Assembly (NCBI RefSeq): GCF_000143415.4
Contig: NW_003314359.1
Location: forward strand, 281,477-345,476
DNA length: 64,000 nt
Direction of reading: 5' to 3'
Origin: Selaginella moellendorffii
Lineage: Eukaryota; Plantae; Lycopodiophyta
Positions 2,149 through 40,452 of this stretch are shown here, piece by piece. Every line of letters begins with the position of its first letter. Position 1 is the stretch's first letter. The notes under the pieces are model-generated. The model saw only the letters and a list, made by a program, of their open reading frames with translations. It searched no databases and had not been told where the DNA came from. Position numbers and translations under genes: made by a program.

Positions 2149-5100
2149 TCAGCTCGTGGCACTGCTCGAGCCATCCTGCGCTCGTTGCTTTAGTAGCTCC
2201 ATGAGAGCAGCCCTGCGTCGTGACTCCGCCTGCTGTTGCGAGCGTCTCCCATGCTCTTTCAAGTCCCTGGATAGATTACGCGCGTAAATAACGTCCTTCT
2301 CAGACCAAACGCGATCAAGAGACTTACTTGCAGCGAGGAACCCGGCAGTCCGACTCCTTGCACGACCGAGCATGGAGTTGCAAGAGATGCCACATCAACT
2401 TGCAGTGACGGCATCCTCCAGAGGCCCTCGTCTTACATACCGTCCCGTGTCTAAACAAGTTTTTCACCTTCCGACACTTCGGATACTGGCATTGGAAAGA
2501 ACAGCACTGAGACGAGTGAATCAGGAGCTGCACAATTTTTCGGAGCTGCCAATACACAGAGAAAAGATAACTTAGACGAGAAACAACAAACAACAAGGCC
2601 AGCACAAACCTGTACAACGCGTTGTTGCCGAGCTTCTTTATTCTGTGCATTCCGTTCGGCTACTGATAGCTGGGGTTTGAGCTTATGTGGGTGCTTTGGT
2701 AGCTCCTTGTGATAGCAGGCCGCACAGAGGTCAAAATCAGCGCACGTATCGCACCGCCAGCCCTTCCCCGTTTCAATATCTTGGTTGCAGATATTGCAGG
2801 AAGTCACGAATGCTGGAGCTGTAGGATTATGTAGGTGATAAAGCACCATCATAGAAGAATGCTTGGCGCGTCTTAATGTATCGTGCTGGTAGTGGTTGCC
2901 TTGGCACAGGCTCAAGAACGCTTGTCTCGTATCAAAAAACTCACTTTCCATAATCTCATCTTTATCTTCGGTTTCTGCGGGTATATCATTGACCTCGACC
3001 TGCGTGGATAAGACAGTTCAGGGACTACTAGAGACGGGACCATACATACCGCAAATAACTCATGAGTTTCCCTGCTGTTCCACGGGTGCCTGTCCTTTTC
3101 ATCCCTCTTCTGGTCGGCAACATAACACCTGAAAGCCATTGCATCACAAGATCATTCTTTGGAAAGTCGAGAAATTGTTAATCAACCTGTTGCACAGGTG
3201 GAAGTTCTTGCATTGTTTGCAAACCCAGCGACACTCCGAAGTGATAAAGAGACGGCAGTGCCGGCAAGAATGATGCATGTGGACCAAAATAAAGTCCTCC
3301 TTTAGAGGTGATATTGCTTGTCCAAGCTGTCATAAAACAAAACATGTCTAGAAATAAAGTTGGAACCAATACACTTACCTTGTGCATCAGTTGCAAGTCC
3401 TTTGAGGCATTGCTAGAGGGCTCGGATTGAGCTCCAATTCTCTTTGCAACACCTTTCTTGCTTATTCCCTTCTTGTGAAGCCTTCGTTTATCCTCCTCGT
3501 CCTGGTGAAGCTGTAGCAGAACTTCTTCTGCCGCCCCAGGCCAATAATCCCCGTCAAAATAAGGAAGTCGTGCAGCAGTTACGTGAGCCTTGCACTCGTC
3601 AGGAGAAATAAAAAAGTAATCGTAGAAGTTTGTTAACTCCACAACAATGTTCTCTTTTGTCGCTTTGCCGAGCATTGCAAGGTACCTGTAAAACATATAC
3701 ACTTCAAGCAAATGATGCTCATGAAGCATCTCACCATTCTCGGAGTTTATCCGACTTAGGTGTCTTTTGGATCTCCGGATGGCAATACAGTATATAGTCT
3801 TCTCCTCGAAGAGGTGGACAAGCCCAAATATAACAGCTACCGAAACCTCTTCTTTTACAATATTCCAGATATCCAATCTGCAAATACAAAACTTGTTAAC
3901 CTGCATCATCAAACAATTACAAACGAAGTACCAGGATTTCGTGATAAACAAATGTTCGAAGAGCTTCACCCGTAACGGTTTTCACTTCGGGCCGAAAATA
4001 CTTGACAGAGTCCAAGTAAGCAATATAAAGCCGACGATTGTTCGGTTCAGGGCATTCAGCACCAAACTCCTGTACGTACATCCCAAATAGACACACCTCG
4101 ACTCCTTCAATTCTTTGAAAGAGTAATACCACCTAAGAAAGACAGGAGATTAGCCAGCACGCAAGTATATGGCGGGCGGATACCTTCGACTTGTAAAGGT
4201 ATTCACTGGGATAATTGCTGTCTTTAAATATTTCCAGAAATCGCTGCTTCACCTCAAGCTTTTTGTCGACAGATGATACTACTCTCACAACTAAACCTTC
4301 AGCTCCAGGGACCTATAAGAACAAACAGTCAAAAGCAAGTAAAAAAGAAGCATGAATACCTCTTCAAAACTTTTCCCTTGTGCTTCGGCGCGGTCAGCTC
4401 TTTCCTTCCTCAAACTGCGTGCCAATCTCTGCTCTAGATGGTCACTCAGTAACGTTTTCGGCAGGTCTTTGGCACCTAAAACGGCTGTTAAGGGAAGAGG
4501 AGTTCTATCCCCACTTTCCATGTCGTTCAGCAGACAATAGGGGCAAATAAATTCCGTGTCACCACCTTCATTTCTTCTACCATTAAATAAGGCACAGATT
4601 TGATGCTGCCATACATTGCACTTGTCACATTGAACCCACTGCATAAACCATACAAGTCAGACGTTTCAAGGAAAGAGAAAAAATATAGAAGCACATACCG
4701 CCTCTTCTGTTTCTTCATCGTTTTTCTTCTTTTCCAATTTCGACTTGGGATAAAGCTGACCATCAAGGCCAACTGTATCAGCAGGGCTGGCATTGTAGCA
4801 GGGAATGCAAAAGTAGTGCCTAGTTTCGCCAGACCCTGCAGTGTAGTATACAGAGTTCCTCTTCAAACGAACTCCACAAGTTGTGCAATACAAAGGTGGC
4901 GGTTCGAAGGTAAGTCTCTCGACAGCACATACACGACAAGCACTTTCGCTGGGTTGCTGTTCCATTGCTTGATGCTTTTCAGCCTTTGCCTTACTCTGTA
5001 ATGGTTCGAAAGAGTTAGAAAAGAAAACTTCAAACGGGAACGAACCTGTCCTGTCCATAACCGAATGCTGGAAAAGTGCTCCAAAATCTGCTCCTTGGAG

Positions 5101-7010
5101 AAAAGCTCTAGGAGAGAGATGCCAACGACTTTCGACTTCCCGGACTTGAGCGACACATTATTCGACGAATGCCCAACCTCTTCCTTGATGGCGACTAATG
5201 CCGAACTCTCCATAGACGGGCCAGCTTCCAGCATGCCATCATCTTGCCCATCAGGCAAAACGCAAGGCTTCACGTCCACTTGCTGCGCGACAATGGGACC
5301 TTTTCCTTTGCACATGCCGGCGCTCTTCACCTGAGCAGTAGTACCAGGCTCGACTTTGATCTTCTTAGGAAATGGAGGACCACAGTCACTGCCTGCTCCA
5401 ACTCCACCGTAGCTCTGAATGTCGACTTCTTCCTTGACCCTCTTAGCAGCCACTTGAGTCTCTTCGGTGCAGGTCGAAGCGGTAACAACGCTCGACGAAG
5501 CAGCGGCGATCGTTGCTGCCTGCGCAGCTGCTCGTGCAAGTCGTCGAGCCGGAGCACACAATGCACACTGGAGGTTTTCGCACTGAGAATGGTGGCGGAG
5601 CAGCGCCCGAACGACTTGGCAGTGACTCGACTGGCAAGCGGTCTCCCGGCACTTGGTCGCATGCCTCAAAACCTGTTGTACGTAGTGGCATCGGGAGTTG
5701 AAATTGCACTGTCCTTCCGGAGCGGTACACTTGTTTGCATGGCGTAATAAACATAGCCAGTGCTGCTGCCTCCTCAACATCTCCTTTTTGTCGCCTGACA
5801 TCCCATTAGCAGTACCGTCCCCAGGCTTCAATCCATTCTGTAACCTGTCTTGGGCAGTGGCAACCCCGTTTTGTACGCGGACCACATCAGCCTTTTTCTG
5901 GTTCTGGTTTGGAGTCTTTTTCTGCTCTTGCACTGTAGTCGCTTCTGACTGTCGCTGTTGCAACTGAGACGGCAGACCAGGTACTGGAATCATTTTCGAA
6001 GACTGGCTGCTGGGTATTTCCCCATTGAGTGACTTGTGTATTTGGAAGCCTTCACCTGGGACATGCCGCCGTCAGCAAATCTATACAAAAAGTTGAAAGA
6101 TAAAGAACTTACGCTGGATCTGTCCCTGGCCGAAATAGCTGGACGACGAGTGCATTGCGTTCCCATTCAAAGAATACTGACCTCCGTTCCCAATGAAGGG
6201 ACTATCTAACCTCCCATTTACAAGCGACGGGTGCATTTGAGCCGAGGTGACCATGTTGGAGCCCTGTTGCACCATTCGCACCCCGCCAGCTCCCGAGTGA
6301 GAAACCAAAGAATTCGAGGGCGCCGTCGACACGGCTAAGTTGTTCCTACGAGAGCCGGGCATTGCAAACTGCCCCGGCGCTCCGGAGAAGGACGCTGGAC
6401 TGGTGGCCAGGCCGGGAGTCGGGATCATAGTAGCTGCGCCGGGCGTTGGAATCATGGTGGCCGTGTTCCTAGAGTTAGCTGCCGTGTTCCTCCCGGCAGA
6501 AATCCGCTTGGCTACCGACTGGATCCGTTTCTCCAGTGTGTTCATATCATTGTACTCCTCCTGTAGTGATGCTCTCGATCAGTCACGAACAAGAGAAAAG
6601 TGTAACCAACCTTGGACGCGGCGTCGCGATATAAACCCTCCTCGAGCCTCCTCACCATCTCGGGCAACCTTTGCTGGTACTCGGCAGTAGAGTTGTTCTT
6701 CTGGAAGAGCTTCAAGCTGGGTAGCAACAAGAGGAAGAGAGTCAAAACCAGGGAGAAAACTTACATTGATGGCGTGATGGAAGCGGAGGGAGCCTTCCAT
6801 TCCATGCAACAGGCAAATGGACGCGATGATGCGAGCTAGCCTATACCCTAAAAGACAAAAGGGGATAGCGATTTCTTACACATGAGCGATCACGAGCCTG
6901 CGGTCGGGCACATCGTCGCCCTCGGCGTGCCAGGACGCGCGATTGCGGCTGGAGCTGGCAATGTGCTGATGCCCCGGGGGCTGGCCCTGCGTCTGGTGCT
7001 GCATATTCAT
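2149..7010 (-). CDS. HAC1: CBP/p300-family histone acetyltransferase (HAC1/HAC12-like), multi-exon
   Basis: Start MNMQHQ at 7010; KIX-like exons ([13 protein letters not shown]), TAZ (LRHANKC), PHD ([19 protein letters not shown]), KAT11 core ([29 protein letters not shown]), ZZ finger ([12 protein letters not shown]), TAZ2, C-terminal SRRRAA.ME. Confidence 0.96.
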
Positions 7011-7523
7011 AGCTCAGCTACTGGGGCATTGAGCGATCGAGCAGCGGCGCATTGAGGTGGAGCGAATCGACTAGCACCGCCTACTCCTGCTGCTGCTGCC
7101 GGAATCCCATGGCGCGCTCCTCCACAGACCCTAAGAACAGAGCGCCATAGGCACCAGATCTTCCTGCCCATGAGCCCCAAAAACCCTAACAGCACGATTT
7201 TATTTAGGTCTGTAGGCTTAACAACAAGGATATTCCCCCTGCACGTTGGGGATATACCTGTGTCCGAGCAGCGGTATTGGAAGCGAATAAAATGGGAAGG
7301 AGGAACCTTCACACAAATCGAAATCGAAGCTTCGCATTGTAAGCATGGAATCCAGCAAAGCTTTGGTCGATGGAAATGGTGATGTCACCTCCTTTGCTCC
7401 GGCACTTGTTTGAATGGAATATGGAGAGTTTTTATTTGTGGAGGATCCCTTAAACCCTAGCGGGGGTTAGGGCGGTGTGCAAGCGATCTGGTACGTCCGG
7501 GGCACGGATTCTTCCGCGCGATC

Positions 7524-10500
7524 ATGGAAGAGGACGAGCAGCAGCAGCAGGGGCAGCAGCAAGACGATCGCTTCTTCGAGCGCGACGTCGTGGGGAGCAT
7601 TGCCAATCCGGATAGGGTCGGGATTATCGACGAGATCGGGGGCGCTCCCTCCACTTCCGGCTCCGAGGACGACGAGGAATGCGGGCAGGACGTGGAGGAG
7701 GGCGCCGCGATCATCGTGTGGAATGATGGGGAGGAGGAGACGGTCGATCTGTCGGAGGTCCGGCTCGTCGACCGCGTTCTGGATCGCGGCGAATTGGTGG
7801 CGCTTGCCGGCGATCCGCTGGACCAGTTTGGGGTCGTCCAGAGCGTGGAGCTCCTGGCGGATTTGCGGCTCCGGAATGGAGAGGTGATGAAGAGCGTGAG
7901 CAGCAGCAAGCTCCGGCAAGTGTGCCCGTTCATGCAAGGCGACTACGTTGTTCGCGGGAACTGGATCGGCCGAGTGGATGAAGTGGAGGAGAACGTCACC
8001 GTGCTCTTCGAGGACGGAGCAAAGTGTAAGGTTTTCCGAGCGGACAACTATACTCTCGTGCCGGCTGAAGCAGCGGAGTGGTCTTGCGACTACTACGTCG
8101 GGATGAGAGTTCGTCCGGCCAAGAATGTGGTTTTCAAGACCGCGAGATGGTTGAGGGGGGGCTGGAAGTCGAGCCGAGACGAAGGGACGGTATGCCGGGT
8201 GGATGTTGCCGCGTTGCTTGTTTACTGGATGGGAGTCGGGGTCGGGCCAGTGACTCCGACACCGGCGGACTACCAGGACGTCAAGGACGTGATCCATTTG
8301 CCGCATTTCTCACACTCGAGAGAGCACTGGCGCATCGGGGACCATACGCTGCCGCCGAAGGACGTTACTGTTGGAGGAGAAGTGGCTCCGAAAGAGAGCA
8401 ACGACGGCCGAGAGGTTTCTTCCACAGCAGTCTCAACTTCGTCAGACGCAGTCAGCTCAAATCCGGAGCCTTCGCTGGCCGAGGAAGCTTTGCACGAGAG
8501 CTCTCCGCTACAACGAAAGCGCTCCCTCTCGAGACGCTGCACGGTTCGAAGGAAAGCCAAGAGAAAGCTGGTGCCTTTGGAGATCCCAGTTCGCGTGACT
8601 CGGACGGAGCGTCTGGTGGATGTGCTGTGGCAAGATGGATCGAAGAGTGCTAGGATCCCGGCCACGTCCTTGGTTCCAGTTTTATACCTCAACGACAGCG
8701 ATTTTTGGCCCGAGACATACGTGATCGAGAGGGGAGCGGAGGCCGAGATGGATGATGATAAAGGCTATAGGAGAGTAGGCATAGTTAAAACGATCGACGC
8801 TACACAACGGACAGCCAGAGTCAAGTGGTTCAAGAGAGTGACGTCTCCCGACGAGGCTTGCGAGTTTGAGGCGGAGGAAACCGTCGGCGTATACGACATT
8901 TTGGAGCACGTAGATTATCGATACAACATAGGCGACATAGTCATCCGGCTTACTCCGCAGGTTCCCAAGGCCGACGACTCGACTGAAAAAGTGGAGCAGC
9001 CGCAAGCACCAGACGATGAAGGGAAGCATGCTAACGATCCTACAGACTTGTCCTGGGTGGGATCAATCGTGGGGCTCGAGGACGGATACATAATGGTGGA
9101 ATGGGGAAGCGGGGACGTGACAAAGGTTAGTTGGCTGTTGTCATGTTATTGCTGATGAGTTGCTTGCTTTGTAGGTCGGTCCCCATGGCATTTTTGTCGT
9201 GGATAGAAATGAGAGCGGCGACGATGAGTCTAGTTCCGACGACGACGACGACGATGCTGATAGCTGGGAAACCGTGGACTCCAATAGCTTAAGTGACTTT
9301 GAGGTACTATTGTTGATATTGGCTGCCACTGCAATAGCTTGCTTTGTGTTGTTTCAGTCGACTCCCGTACCAGCAGAGCAACCTGTGACTCGGGAGGAAA
9401 CTCAAGGTGGTCTTTTGACTTTTGTCCTTTCATCTATGTCAAGGCTTATTTCTACAATCATGGGACTTCGAGCTAAGAAGGTGGTAGCTGTAGGTGAACA
9501 AGAAGACATTGAGGAGCCAGACGAGCTGGTCTGTGAGATGCTCCTTGTACGAAAGTCTCCTGCCGATCGGCACTTCGACCAGAACACGAATGACCATTCA
9601 ACCGAGTGCTCTGTAAGACCTCTAACAGAGTTCAAGTCTTTTGACATGGTCAAGGATGCTTCGGATCACCACTTCGCGGATGTAAAGAACGAGGTATGTA
9701 AATGGCTTTTTGGTTATTTTCCTTACGTGGTTTCTTTCAGGTTCCGAATCAACGCAAGTGGCTTAAGAGGGTGAACCAAGAGTGGGACATTCTGCAAAAG
9801 GACCTTCCCGGTATGGTGCCGTGATCTCACTGGATTTTCAGCTATGTTCTTTGTTGGCGCAGACACGATTTTTGTGCTAATGTACGAAGACCGTATGGAC
9901 CTGTTGAGAGCAGCCATAGTTGGAGCAACAGGAACACCATACCACGATGGATTCTTTGTGTTCGATCTTTATTTACCTCCGGACTATCCAAATGTCCCTC
10001 CGGTGAGTAGCTTTTCCACTGCCTGTCGTGGAGTTTTTTGACTGACTTGAACTTGCAGATGGTCCATTATCATTCGGGCGGATTGAGGATGAATCCCAAT
10101 CTCTACGAAAACGGCAAAGTGTGTCTCAGTCTCCTCAATACCTGGAGCGGCAGGGGAAGCGAGCTCTGGAATCCAGGAACGTCTAACATATTGCAAGTGC
10201 TAGTTTCAATCCAGGGACTGGTGCTCAACGCCAAGCCTTACTTCAACGAAGCAGGCTACGACAACCAGACTGGAACAGGAGAAGGGGAGAAGAACTCGAT
10301 CGCTTACAACGAGAACACCTTCTTATTGTCCTGCAAGACGATCCTATATCTCCTGCGCAATCCTCCAATGGTACGTAGAGTCGTATACTTTCTTTCTTTC
10401 CTTGCTCTTGAACCGTTCCTTCTCAGCATTTCGAGGAGCTCTTGAAGAGCCATTTCCGGTACCGGGGTTTCAAGTTCCTGTCGCTGTGCAGGGCCTACCT

Positions 10501-13886: not shown

Positions 13887-13934
13887 AATTACCACTAATT
13901 ACCGTACACTAGGGATAGTTTTAGGGTTTATGAG

Positions 13935-36208: not shown

Positions 36209-38037
<1,829 letters not shown>

Positions 38038-38209
38038 GCCTCTCCTCGGCTTTACGACCTACAAGCATAGAGAAAAATAAAAATCGTATTTTTACATCAA
38101 ACACGAAAAAAATTTCTCTTTGTTTGATGCTCAAGGTCTCCACATCGTTTGCTCTAGACAGTTTTTCTCGATCCAGATCTTCTTCCGACTTTTCTAGCGA
38201 CGATTTCCC

Positions 38210-39038
38210 TCATTTGGTCTCCAAGACCTCGTCGTCGTCCGTGGAATCGTCACGGCAAGTACACTCGGAAGTGTTGAGATTGAGGCCACAGCGCGTGCAC
38301 AGCCCCTTGCAGATGGAGCTACAAATGGAGAAGTAAGGGACGTCCAAATGGACAGTGTCACGGATATAAGACGAGAGATCCATCACCTTGACCTCGTCCG
38401 GGAAGTGGAACTTGTCGTCCAGGTCGATGTCCAGCACGGGCTCGCCGGGCTCCGGCTCCTCGCCGAGCACCACACCAATGGACGGCTCCGTTGGCTCTTC
38501 CACGGGAGTCCGAGATAGAAGAACGCTGAAAGGTGAGAAGACTCGAGTAGCATGAGGAGCCAGACACCTTGAGTTTGCAGGAAAAGAAGGATCAAACAAA
38601 GTTGGAAAGACGAAACAATCCATACCTGTCACAAAGCACGCAAACAGCAGTCTTGACGATTCCATTCAGCTTCAAGTCTCCGGATTTATCTTTGGTGACG
38701 TCGTATGAGACTCCCACTGGAGTAGCGGTTGCCGGGTCGGCGCCGCCGGGCAAAACTCCCATGGATGTGGCGAGAGTTCTCGACACCTTGGACGAGAACT
38801 GCTTGAGTCCCAGGTTCTCCAGTGTCGTCTGGCACTCGAAGTGGCTCTGGACGGCGCTGCGCTTGTAGGTGACGGAGCTCGGCACGGGAGGATCGCTGGT
38901 CTGGCTCGGAAACACCGACACGACGTGCATTCTCCTCTGGGAGAGCTTCAGAGATCTCGGTGGAGTTTTTCTTCGCCATGCTACTTCCAGGTTGCTACTG
39001 AAGGAGCTTGAGAGGGGATACGCGCCTAGAGCAGACAT
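38210..39038 (-). CDS. DUF177/YceD plastid large-rRNA accumulation protein; 2 exons
   Basis: Transit peptide, CDRCL, DLSSYIRDTVHL, CKGLCTRCGLNLN...C.C. Confidence 0.9.
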
Positions 39039-39110
39039 CTGGGAGGAGAGAACCAAAACAAGTAGAGAAGGATTGAGTAGGAAACGCAGCATTGCTTACA
39101 CTGTTTTCTT

Positions 39111-39470
39111 TCACTTGGTGGAAGGATTCTGGGTGCTAGCTTTGATGGTCGCAAGATCCTCTAAAGAAGAACAGAGAACTTTAAGTCAGCCAGAAGAAAG
39201 AACTCAAAGCTCGCCCACTTTTATGCGATTCCAGAGCAGCCTTGGTATCAGACGCGAAGAAAATGTTGCCTCGCTTCACGAAGACCGCCTGGAAAGGGGG
39301 AGAATAACAAGACGAGAATTCGCCGACTTAGCAGCGTACCCGTGAAGAAGGAAGGCTCGCAAGCTCGGCGCACGCAACCTCCAGCACCTGCGCCTACGCA
39401 AAGATTGCAGCGCCAACGATTTCGCAGAGGCCAGAAAACCACATACCTTGGACGCTTGCTCCTCCGCCAT
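39111..39470 (-). CDS. 65-aa ASDURF/beta-prefoldin-like microprotein (exons 39470-39447, 39393-39340, 39288-39219, 39160-39111)
   Basis: Manual splicing via three 51-58-nt GT-AG introns gives MAEEQASKAQVLEVACAELASLPSSRAVFVKRGNIFFASDTKAALESHKKDLATIKASTQNPSTK; EL..L...R.V....NIFF core resembles ASDURF and beta-prefoldin hairpins. Confidence 0.75.
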
Positions 39471-39539
39471 CGCTGGGCGGGATAAGGTTTAGGGTTTAGG
39501 CATCTTCAAGGCATATTCTCTAGGGCTTTTGGGCTTCCA
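39471..39539. promoter_or_regulatory. 69-bp bidirectional promoter/5' region with telo-box repeats
   Basis: Lies between divergent ATGs at 39470 (-) and 39540 (+); contains ggtttagggtttagg. Confidence 0.6.
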
Positions 39540-40452
39540 ATGAAGTTTCTTGCACAGAGCGTGCTCGTCGCCTATCCCGACGGGCTTGGCACTGGGCAAC
39601 GCATCGCCGGCGCGCTTGGATCCTCCTCGCTCGATCGCTCGTAAGCATTGCGCCTACGGCGCTTCTCTTTCTCACGCGCTCCAATTGATCGCGCAGTGTC
39701 TCGCACGCCACTCTGTCTCTCGATTCCTACGGCTTGCCCGATGGAAATGTGCTCCTAGAAGTCGTGAATTACAGCAAGGGGGACGTTCCAATGGTACGCT
39801 CTCACGCAAAAGTTTGTCGATCGATCCATTCTCGTTTTCGTTCCACTCTAGGTTTCCTTGATCATCCTCGCGCAAGAGCCGCCACCGCATCTCCATTCCT
39901 GCGTCGCCCACGAGCTCCTGCGCTACATTTTCCACAACGCTCCAGCCGACGAGCAGAGCTTCACCATCTTCGTCCCCAGCGCCGCGCCATTCCCGAGCGT
40001 GGATTCCCGCCACAACACCGCCGGTGCCCGGCTCGCGCACAAGCTCGTCATCAACGACGACCTCTCGGCTCGCAGCCAGATGTTCGCGGAGCTCATCGAC
40101 ACCCCGCAAGACCTCCAGCCCAAGGACGAGTTCCTGGCGTGTCTCGTCCATCTCATGCGCGTCATGGGAGCTCCCGGAGTGATCCTCCTCGTCCCAGTTC
40201 GTCGCGTGAGCCCCCAAGACAGAGCCCTCGTCTCGAGAGAGAAGGATTGCGCATTCCAGGTGAAGTTTTTACTTGATCATGCAAGGATCTAAACTCGTTC
40301 GATCAAGCCAGGCGATCGCGCACCTTGGAGGCCTCCTCGCGCAGTGGATGGCGCTGGAATTCTCCACCCAGATGATGGATCGAAGCCTCCCAGAGAGTTT
40401 CATCACCAGGGACGCGAGAAAACCCGGCGAATGGAGAGATCTCTATACTTGA
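39540..40452 (+). CDS. PBAC5: Proteasome biogenesis-associated chaperone PBAC5-like; 4 exons
   Basis: MKF.QSV, LSLDSYGL, VSLIIL...PP....C..HELL, DEFLACLVH; C-terminal WRDLYT* forms an HbYX motif. Confidence 0.75.

Follow-up and report, generated by a model that had tools for sequence, protein, structure and literature searches.

A candidate ASDURF-type prefoldin-like gene as the probable upstream cistron of YceD/DUF177 in Selaginella moellendorffii

Human ASDURF and ASNSD1 are encoded by a characterised bicistron (PMC13303939). Here we describe a locus of the spikemoss Selaginella moellendorffii that appears to have the same layout, with a small beta-prefoldin-like protein as the upstream cistron and a functionally unrelated main open reading frame (ORF) downstream of it. 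The locus lies at positions 39470 to 38210, on the reverse strand, of a stretch of 64,000 nucleotides (nt) from RefSeq contig NW_003314359.1 (positions 281,477 to 345,476; hereafter the window, whose own numbering is used throughout). The two systems differ in several respects. The host gene here is not ASNSD1 but YceD/DUF177, which encodes a plastid ribosome-biogenesis factor, and the small protein has 65 amino acids (aa), as against the 96 positions of the ASDURF family model. In addition, the cistrons would here be joined by the splicing of an intercistronic intron.

A comparable arrangement in plants is CDC26–TTM3, where a small subunit of a large cytosolic/nuclear complex likewise shares an mRNA with an unrelated enzyme that is encoded downstream of it (PMC11291117, PMC9768141). 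That pair, however, is kept from chlorophytes to angiosperms (PMC11291117), whereas the ASDURF-type/YceD pair was found in no other taxon compared. For green-algal bicistrons leaky scanning has been demonstrated, and these mRNAs have short 5′ untranslated regions (UTRs), few intervening AUGs, and cistrons that are separated by spacers down to 14 nt or overlap (PMC11291117). The Selaginella locus resembles the algal polycistrons in its very short spacer (11 nt), in its leader of less than 70 nt, and in having no intervening AUG. It differs from them in the context of the first AUG, which in the algae is usually a weak Kozak-like one and here is strong, and in that its host is a vascular plant. 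The Arabidopsis readthrough loci with intergenic splicing share with it an intron that spans the end of gene 1 and the start of gene 2 (PMC9768141). Unlike it, they have separate monocistronic mRNAs and a gene 1 poly(A) site inside the spliced-out interval (PMC9768141), whereas the interval here comprises only 72 nt and the first gene is without an evident 3′ UTR of its own. The layout is rare yet already known in plants, and the present locus adds to the kind represented by ASDURF–ASNSD1 and CDC26–TTM3.

The small gene and its predicted prefoldin-like product

Four small exons, joined across three internal introns that all have GT..AG ends (53, 51, and 58 nt), give a 65-aa ORF upstream of YceD (Table 1). 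When every coordinate was recomputed, the features described in the original prediction were recovered exactly, namely four tiny exons with GT–AG introns of 51–58 nt, a 65-aa protein, a TGA at 39113–39111 followed by 11 nt, and a 61-nt intron that abuts the DUF177 ATG at 39038. It had also been noted that the ORF track misses this protein, which is borne out: the ORF is absent from such listings because it is split by introns over four exons. The RefSeq annotation calls no gene at its position on either haplotype. Across the cistron boundary the spliced RNA reads TGA-AAGAAAACAGT-ATG, the 11-nt sequence AAGAAAACAGT being the spacer. The intron between the cistrons has a GTAAG donor and pyrimidines at 17 of the last 20 bases before its AG, and the introns of the small gene are similar in size to the 58-nt intron of YceD.

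The window haplotype corresponds to scaffold GL377663.1 of assembly GCA_000143415.2, where the locus (L006) is base-for-base identical over 38150–39600. The same assembly holds the locus on a second haplotype, GL377569.1 (L007), with about 1.3% substitutions relative to the window, and there the small ORF and every splice site are intact.

It is very likely that the small ORF is a real, hidden ASDURF-type prefoldin-like gene. It appears to be more than a chance frame because of its match to the Prefoldin_2 profile, its GC content by codon position, the sizes of its introns, and its intactness on the second haplotype. In a Pfam profile search, the 65-aa protein matches Prefoldin_2 (PF01920) with an E-value of 5.7e-5 and 23.5 bits (cut-off 27.6). 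Residues 8–59 align with positions 27–78 of the 106 in the profile, which form its hairpin-centred middle, and a protein of 65 aa can cover only the central half of this model. The match to the ASDURF family ASNSD1-SEP (PF21975) is collinear with it, residues 3–60 aligning with positions 25–84 of 96, and has an E-value of 0.085 and 13.4 bits, a score below the curated cut-off of 27 that does not by itself place the protein in the family. Of the ASDURF/prefoldin likeness that had been proposed from the letters, the size class has stood, the match to Prefoldin_2 is the better of the two though still below its cut-off, and the likeness to the ASDURF family itself has turned out weak. The hydrophobic pattern, judged by eye only, is compatible with a helix–hairpin–helix. 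The GC fractions at codon positions 1, 2, and 3 are 0.56, 0.47, and 0.65 in the small ORF, compared with 0.55, 0.47, and 0.69 in the YceD coding sequence (CDS), and the introns of the small gene are lower in GC than its exons.

The predicted protein has a mass of 6.9 kDa and an isoelectric point (pI) of 8.9. It falls in the microprotein size class of At1g49245, the Arabidopsis ASDURF (74 aa, 8.5 kDa, pI 9.0; PMC4792155 supplement), whereas the canonical beta-prefoldins and PDRG1 have at least 120 aa. The likeness to At1g49245 is one of size and charge, not of alignment, and the Arabidopsis protein differs in being annotated as a gene of its own, of 512 bp (PMC4792155 supplement). Similar-sized entries are listed for poplar, soybean, and cucumber (70, 70, and 83 aa, respectively; PMC4792155 supplement). 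In affinity purification–mass spectrometry from Arabidopsis, At1g49245 co-purifies with URI, UXT, PDRG1, PFD2, and PFD6 (bioRxiv 10.1101/2023.12.13.571423). For Selaginella, seven prefoldin genes are listed, with products of 120–352 aa (PMC4792155 supplement). A member of ASDURF size is missing from the Selaginella annotation, and the 65-aa ORF is therefore a natural candidate for it.

The YceD gene and the case for a shared mRNA

Read from ATG 39038 with the 58-nt intron, the YceD frame encodes 256 aa. This form exceeds the gathering score of PF02620 (62.4 bits, E-value 5e-17, cut-off 33.2), and the second exon alone reaches 50.1 bits (E-value 3e-13). The YceD encoded in the window is identical to a RefSeq protein of S. 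moellendorffii, and a plant YceD homologue, DUF177A, is needed for the accumulation of plastid 23S rRNA (PMC5049393). An additional ATG at 39092–39090 lies inside the 61-nt intron, in frame with YceD, and is used as the start in the unspliced RefSeq models, which thereby have 18 more residues. On the second haplotype, one RefSeq gene has two products that differ only N-terminally, P0003 (274 aa, starting with MLRF) and P0004 (256 aa, starting with MSALG). In a spliced leader, the earliest in-frame AUG to follow an in-frame stop is that of MSALG, whereas in the unspliced RNA it is preceded in frame by the MLRF AUG. The short product P0004 therefore fits, to judge from the models, an mRNA from which the 61-nt intron has been removed and to which the upstream exon is attached.

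For the intron inside YceD, the RefSeq model of the window haplotype (P0001, 260 aa) uses a 100-nt interval at 38526–38625. This was rejected in favour of the 58-nt intron at 38625–38568, because the 14 residues that would be lost (RCLAPHATRVFSPF) align with the relative P0002 and are kept in the models of the other haplotype.

We consider it probable that the small gene is the upstream cistron of a bicistronic mRNA, and that this mRNA would be the main source of both proteins. The intergenic geometry points to such an arrangement: the small-ORF stop is followed by 11 nt, the intron, and the YceD ATG, which leaves no room for a separate 3′ end of the small gene, and even the alternative YceD start at ATG 39092 lies only 18 nt past the small-ORF stop. 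Every 5′ UTR of YceD would thus extend into the small gene, and every mRNA that carries the small ORF would continue into YceD. The original prediction had claimed that there is no room for a separate DUF177 promoter, which is correct for the intergenic space, but a start site inside the small gene is still allowed. The 206 nt that separate the two start codons are devoid of ATG, whatever the frame, compared with 1.8 expected from dinucleotide shuffles and 3.1 from genome windows. Zero ATG is seen in 6–10% of the controls, and the ATG-free first cistron is suggestive, not significant, support for a shared mRNA. Upon splicing, the base at −3 of the YceD AUG becomes A instead of C. In 20 sequencing runs from 8 studies, all only guessed to be RNA, 0.3–0.58 of the sampled words of 37900–39900 are present, a proportion that fits exon-only coverage but does not locate junctions.

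We infer one shared transcript, the translation of both ORFs, and the mechanism of initiation, and the expression of the locus can be pictured as follows. A single transcription unit would be driven from the 69-nt interval that the small gene shares head-to-head with the DUF7894 gene. The pre-mRNA would contain five short introns, three in the 65-aa ORF, one between the cistrons, and one in YceD. The mature mRNA would be bicistronic, with 11 nt between the stop of the ASDURF-type ORF and the start codon of the chloroplast-targeted YceD/DUF177, a 23S-rRNA accumulation factor. The 65-aa beta-prefoldin-like protein would be the likely spikemoss counterpart of ASDURF/At1g49245, which is a subunit of the PAQosome in its cytosolic prefoldin-like module. 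Cap-dependent initiation at the first AUG would result in translation of the small ORF, and a fraction of the ribosomes would reach the YceD AUG, either through leaky scanning, which the leader of less than 70 nt and the AUG-free first cistron would favour, or through termination and reinitiation over the 11-nt spacer. Should the intercistronic intron be retained, AUG 39092 would be used and YceD would carry 18 additional hydrophobic residues.

The 69-nt interval contains a telo-box and a site-II-like motif (Table 1). Telo-boxes are found three times in the window, compared with 0.38 expected. The site-II-like AAGCCCA is found 20 times, compared with 17.6 expected; it is not enriched and is weak evidence alone. 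Telo-boxes are 5′-region elements of plant genes that are active in cycling cells, and they work together with other elements (PMC3022908). From 39470 to 39039, the stretch that separates the start codons, neither a telo-box nor a site-II-like motif is present, these two being the only motifs scanned.

A number of observations weigh against the shared mRNA as the main source of the two proteins, or against the ASDURF identity of the first of them. The AUG of the small ORF stands in a strong context, with G at both −3 and +4, and much leaky scanning is therefore less likely, while 65 codons followed by an 11-nt spacer are unfavourable for classical reinitiation. In Arabidopsis, readthrough bicistrons seldom have their second ORF translated and are targets of nonsense-mediated decay (NMD) (PMC9768141); in the Selaginella locus the first stop is upstream of two exon junctions. 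Both Pfam matches lie under their curated cut-offs, and ASDURF membership proper is weakly supported by the sequence. The haplotypes differ at two places in the small CDS, each time non-synonymously (A2S and, in the loop, Ser to Phe), and purifying selection on the small ORF is not visible at two-haplotype depth. Synteny upstream of DUF177 genes in other plants, which had been suggested as a check, did not show the linkage: local tblastn, which has low power for an intron-split 65-aa protein, found no prefoldin-like ORF upstream of YceD in the liverwort Riccia fluitans (L011), in three other assemblies (L009, L010, and L012), or in two transcriptomes (RNA contigs L001–L005 and L008, from two species).

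An alternative that we regard as rather unlikely is that the transcripts overlap but are functionally separate. YceD would then be made mainly from a monocistronic mRNA starting inside the small gene, in exon 4 or in an intron, and the ASDURF-type protein from a longer readthrough RNA, an NMD target that yields no YceD. There is precedent for this in the 271 Arabidopsis readthrough loci, 158 of them with intergenic splicing, where most of the second genes have start sites of their own (PMC9768141). The strong context of the small-ORF AUG would starve a downstream cistron, but the absence of any ATG from the first cistron speaks for the opposite. The models that start with MLRF, P0001 and P0003, would fit an RNA that starts near, or retains, the 61-nt intron; however, an MLRF 5′ UTR confined to the region past the small-ORF stop would be at most 18 nt long, and the MSALG isoform requires a spliced-on upstream exon. 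The absence of the two scanned promoter motifs from 39470–39039 likewise argues against a start site in this region.

It is improbable that the four small exons form no more than a spliced 5′ UTR of YceD, in which the 65-codon frame is a regulatory upstream ORF or noise without a stable product, and that a short, helix-rich peptide resembles prefoldins by chance. The scores of 23.5 (against 27.6) and 13.4 (against 27) would agree with this, but the E-value of 5.7e-5 is obtained over the hairpin-centred middle of the profile and the match is collinear with that to the ASDURF profile. A word-indexed search of the 65-aa protein against 5.8 billion proteins gave no candidate homologue; such a search needs three shared 5-mers, however, and is nearly blind to distant relatives of 65 aa. 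Exon 3 alone (23 aa) had no match in the PDB. The lack of an annotated gene and the non-synonymous nature of both allelic differences also fit a 5′ UTR, whereas the size and pI are like those of plant ASDURF and the GC by codon position is coding-like. Moreover, the Selaginella annotation is otherwise without a prefoldin of ASDURF size, and the Arabidopsis prefoldin-like complex has one. Very improbable, finally, is that the 61-nt segment stays in the mRNA, its splice-like signals being coincidental, and that YceD starts, as P0001 has it, at ATG 39092. Both P0001 and P0003 do start at this ATG and the ORF is open through the segment, but the GTAAG donor, the pyrimidine-rich stretch before the AG, and the typical length are those of an intron, and the RefSeq gene with the MLRF product also has the MSALG product. 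Even without splicing, the two ORFs would be just 18 nt apart, which leaves the bicistronic question unchanged.

We have also considered an in-frame fusion of both ORFs via an alternative donor (AA/GTGAAAG). It was rejected, as the frame meets a stop a few codons on.

Neighbouring features and other taxa

The features of the locus are collected in Table 1.

Table 1. Coordinates of the small gene, the YceD/DUF177 gene, and the upstream interval in the window
Feature	Position	Strand	Remarks
Presumed shared/bidirectional core promoter and very short 5′ leader, 69 nt	39471..39539	-	small-ORF ATG 39470 to DUF7894 ATG 39540 (+)
Site-II-like AAGCCCA, 40 nt upstream of the telo-box	39530..39536	-	motif scan
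Telo-box AAACCCTAA, 19–27 nt upstream of the small-ORF ATG	39489..39497	-	motif scan
Small-protein exon 1: ATG and 7 codons, start context gcgATGg	39447..39470	-	coordinates recomputed
Intron 1: 53 nt, GTATGT..GCGTAG	39394..39446	-	coordinates recomputed
Small-protein exon 2: 18 codons, N-terminal helix part	39340..39393	-	
Intron 2: 51 nt, GTACGC..TTCCAG	39289..39339	-	
Small-protein exon 3: 70 nt, presumed beta-hairpin core and start of C-terminal helix	39219..39288	-	
Intron 3: 58 nt, GTGGGC..CTTTAG	39161..39218	-	
Small-protein exon 4: last 16 codons, TGA 39113–39111, 11-nt intercistronic spacer 39110–39100	39100..39160	-	
Intercistronic intron: 61 nt, GTAAGC..TCCCAG, acceptor adjoins ATG 39038	39039..39099	-	
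YceD/DUF177 exon 1: from ATG 39038, transit-peptide-like N-terminus and domain start	38626..39038	-	
YceD intron: 58 nt, acceptor as in RefSeq models P0003 and P0004	38568..38625	-	
YceD/DUF177 exon 2: cysteine-rich C-terminal part, stop TGA 38212–38210	38210..38567	-	

The other two telo-boxes of the window (AAACCCTAA) are located at 7181–7189 (+) and 13921–13929 (−). The DUF7894 gene, head-to-head with the small gene at a distance of 69 nt from its ATG, occupies 39540–40292 (+) of the window and 1642–2553 of L007. On the other haplotype it encodes 248 aa and matches PF25428 with an E-value of 8.5e-7; it is called on GL377569.1 and is not listed as a gene on the window haplotype. On the other side of the locus, only about 173 nt (38037–38210, −) lie between the YceD stop and the ATG of the next gene on the same strand, which encodes a 392-aa AAA ATPase. 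The YceD 3′ UTR and the promoter and leader of the AAA ATPase gene must fit or overlap within this interval. Positions 37462–37502 are in a T-rich stretch of the latter gene.

The cluster to which the Selaginella YceD belongs comprises just three NCBI models. Outside it, the closest YceD relatives show about 50% identity, and the YceD leaders in the RNA contigs are 92 nt (L001–L005) and 87 nt (L008) long. Since no prefoldin-like ORF was found upstream of YceD in the compared taxa and the Arabidopsis ASDURF gene is stand-alone, the linkage would not be ancestral to land plants, and the pairing appears to be limited to one lineage. In the assembly GCA_001661175.1 (L012), a 150-aa gene at 4538–4990 lies 10 nt upstream of a YceD model at 5001–9686. 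The 150-aa gene has no Pfam hit and is unlike the 65-aa protein, and the YceD model lacks the N-terminal part; the two are probably parts into which the annotation has divided a single YceD gene, and the first is then not an upstream cistron.

Meaning for ASDURF and for plant bicistrons

A more far-reaching reading, which we put forward only tentatively, is that the Selaginella ASDURF orthologue became, independently of animals, an obligate upstream cistron of the plastid YceD, such that this mRNA is the sole source of the two essential proteins and the intercistronic intron sets the stop and the start 11 nt apart. If this is true, ASDURF would be a microprotein that has been repeatedly captured into bicistrons, vascular plants would gain a second natural two-protein mRNA besides CDC26–TTM3, and intron retention could switch the N-terminus of YceD.

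Were the shared mRNA confirmed, it would be one of the rare natural bicistrons of vascular plants, and ASDURF would have come to lie ahead of an unrelated gene a second time, independently. Such a locus could be used to study why some microproteins become upstream cistrons and how plant ribosomes reach an AUG that is located 11 nt past a 65-codon ORF. It also illustrates that gene finders miss intron-split microprotein genes that are concealed in what is taken for a 5′ UTR. The 65-aa protein would supply the ASDURF-size subunit that the Selaginella gene set lacks, and the PAQosome-type module of lycophytes may therefore be complete.

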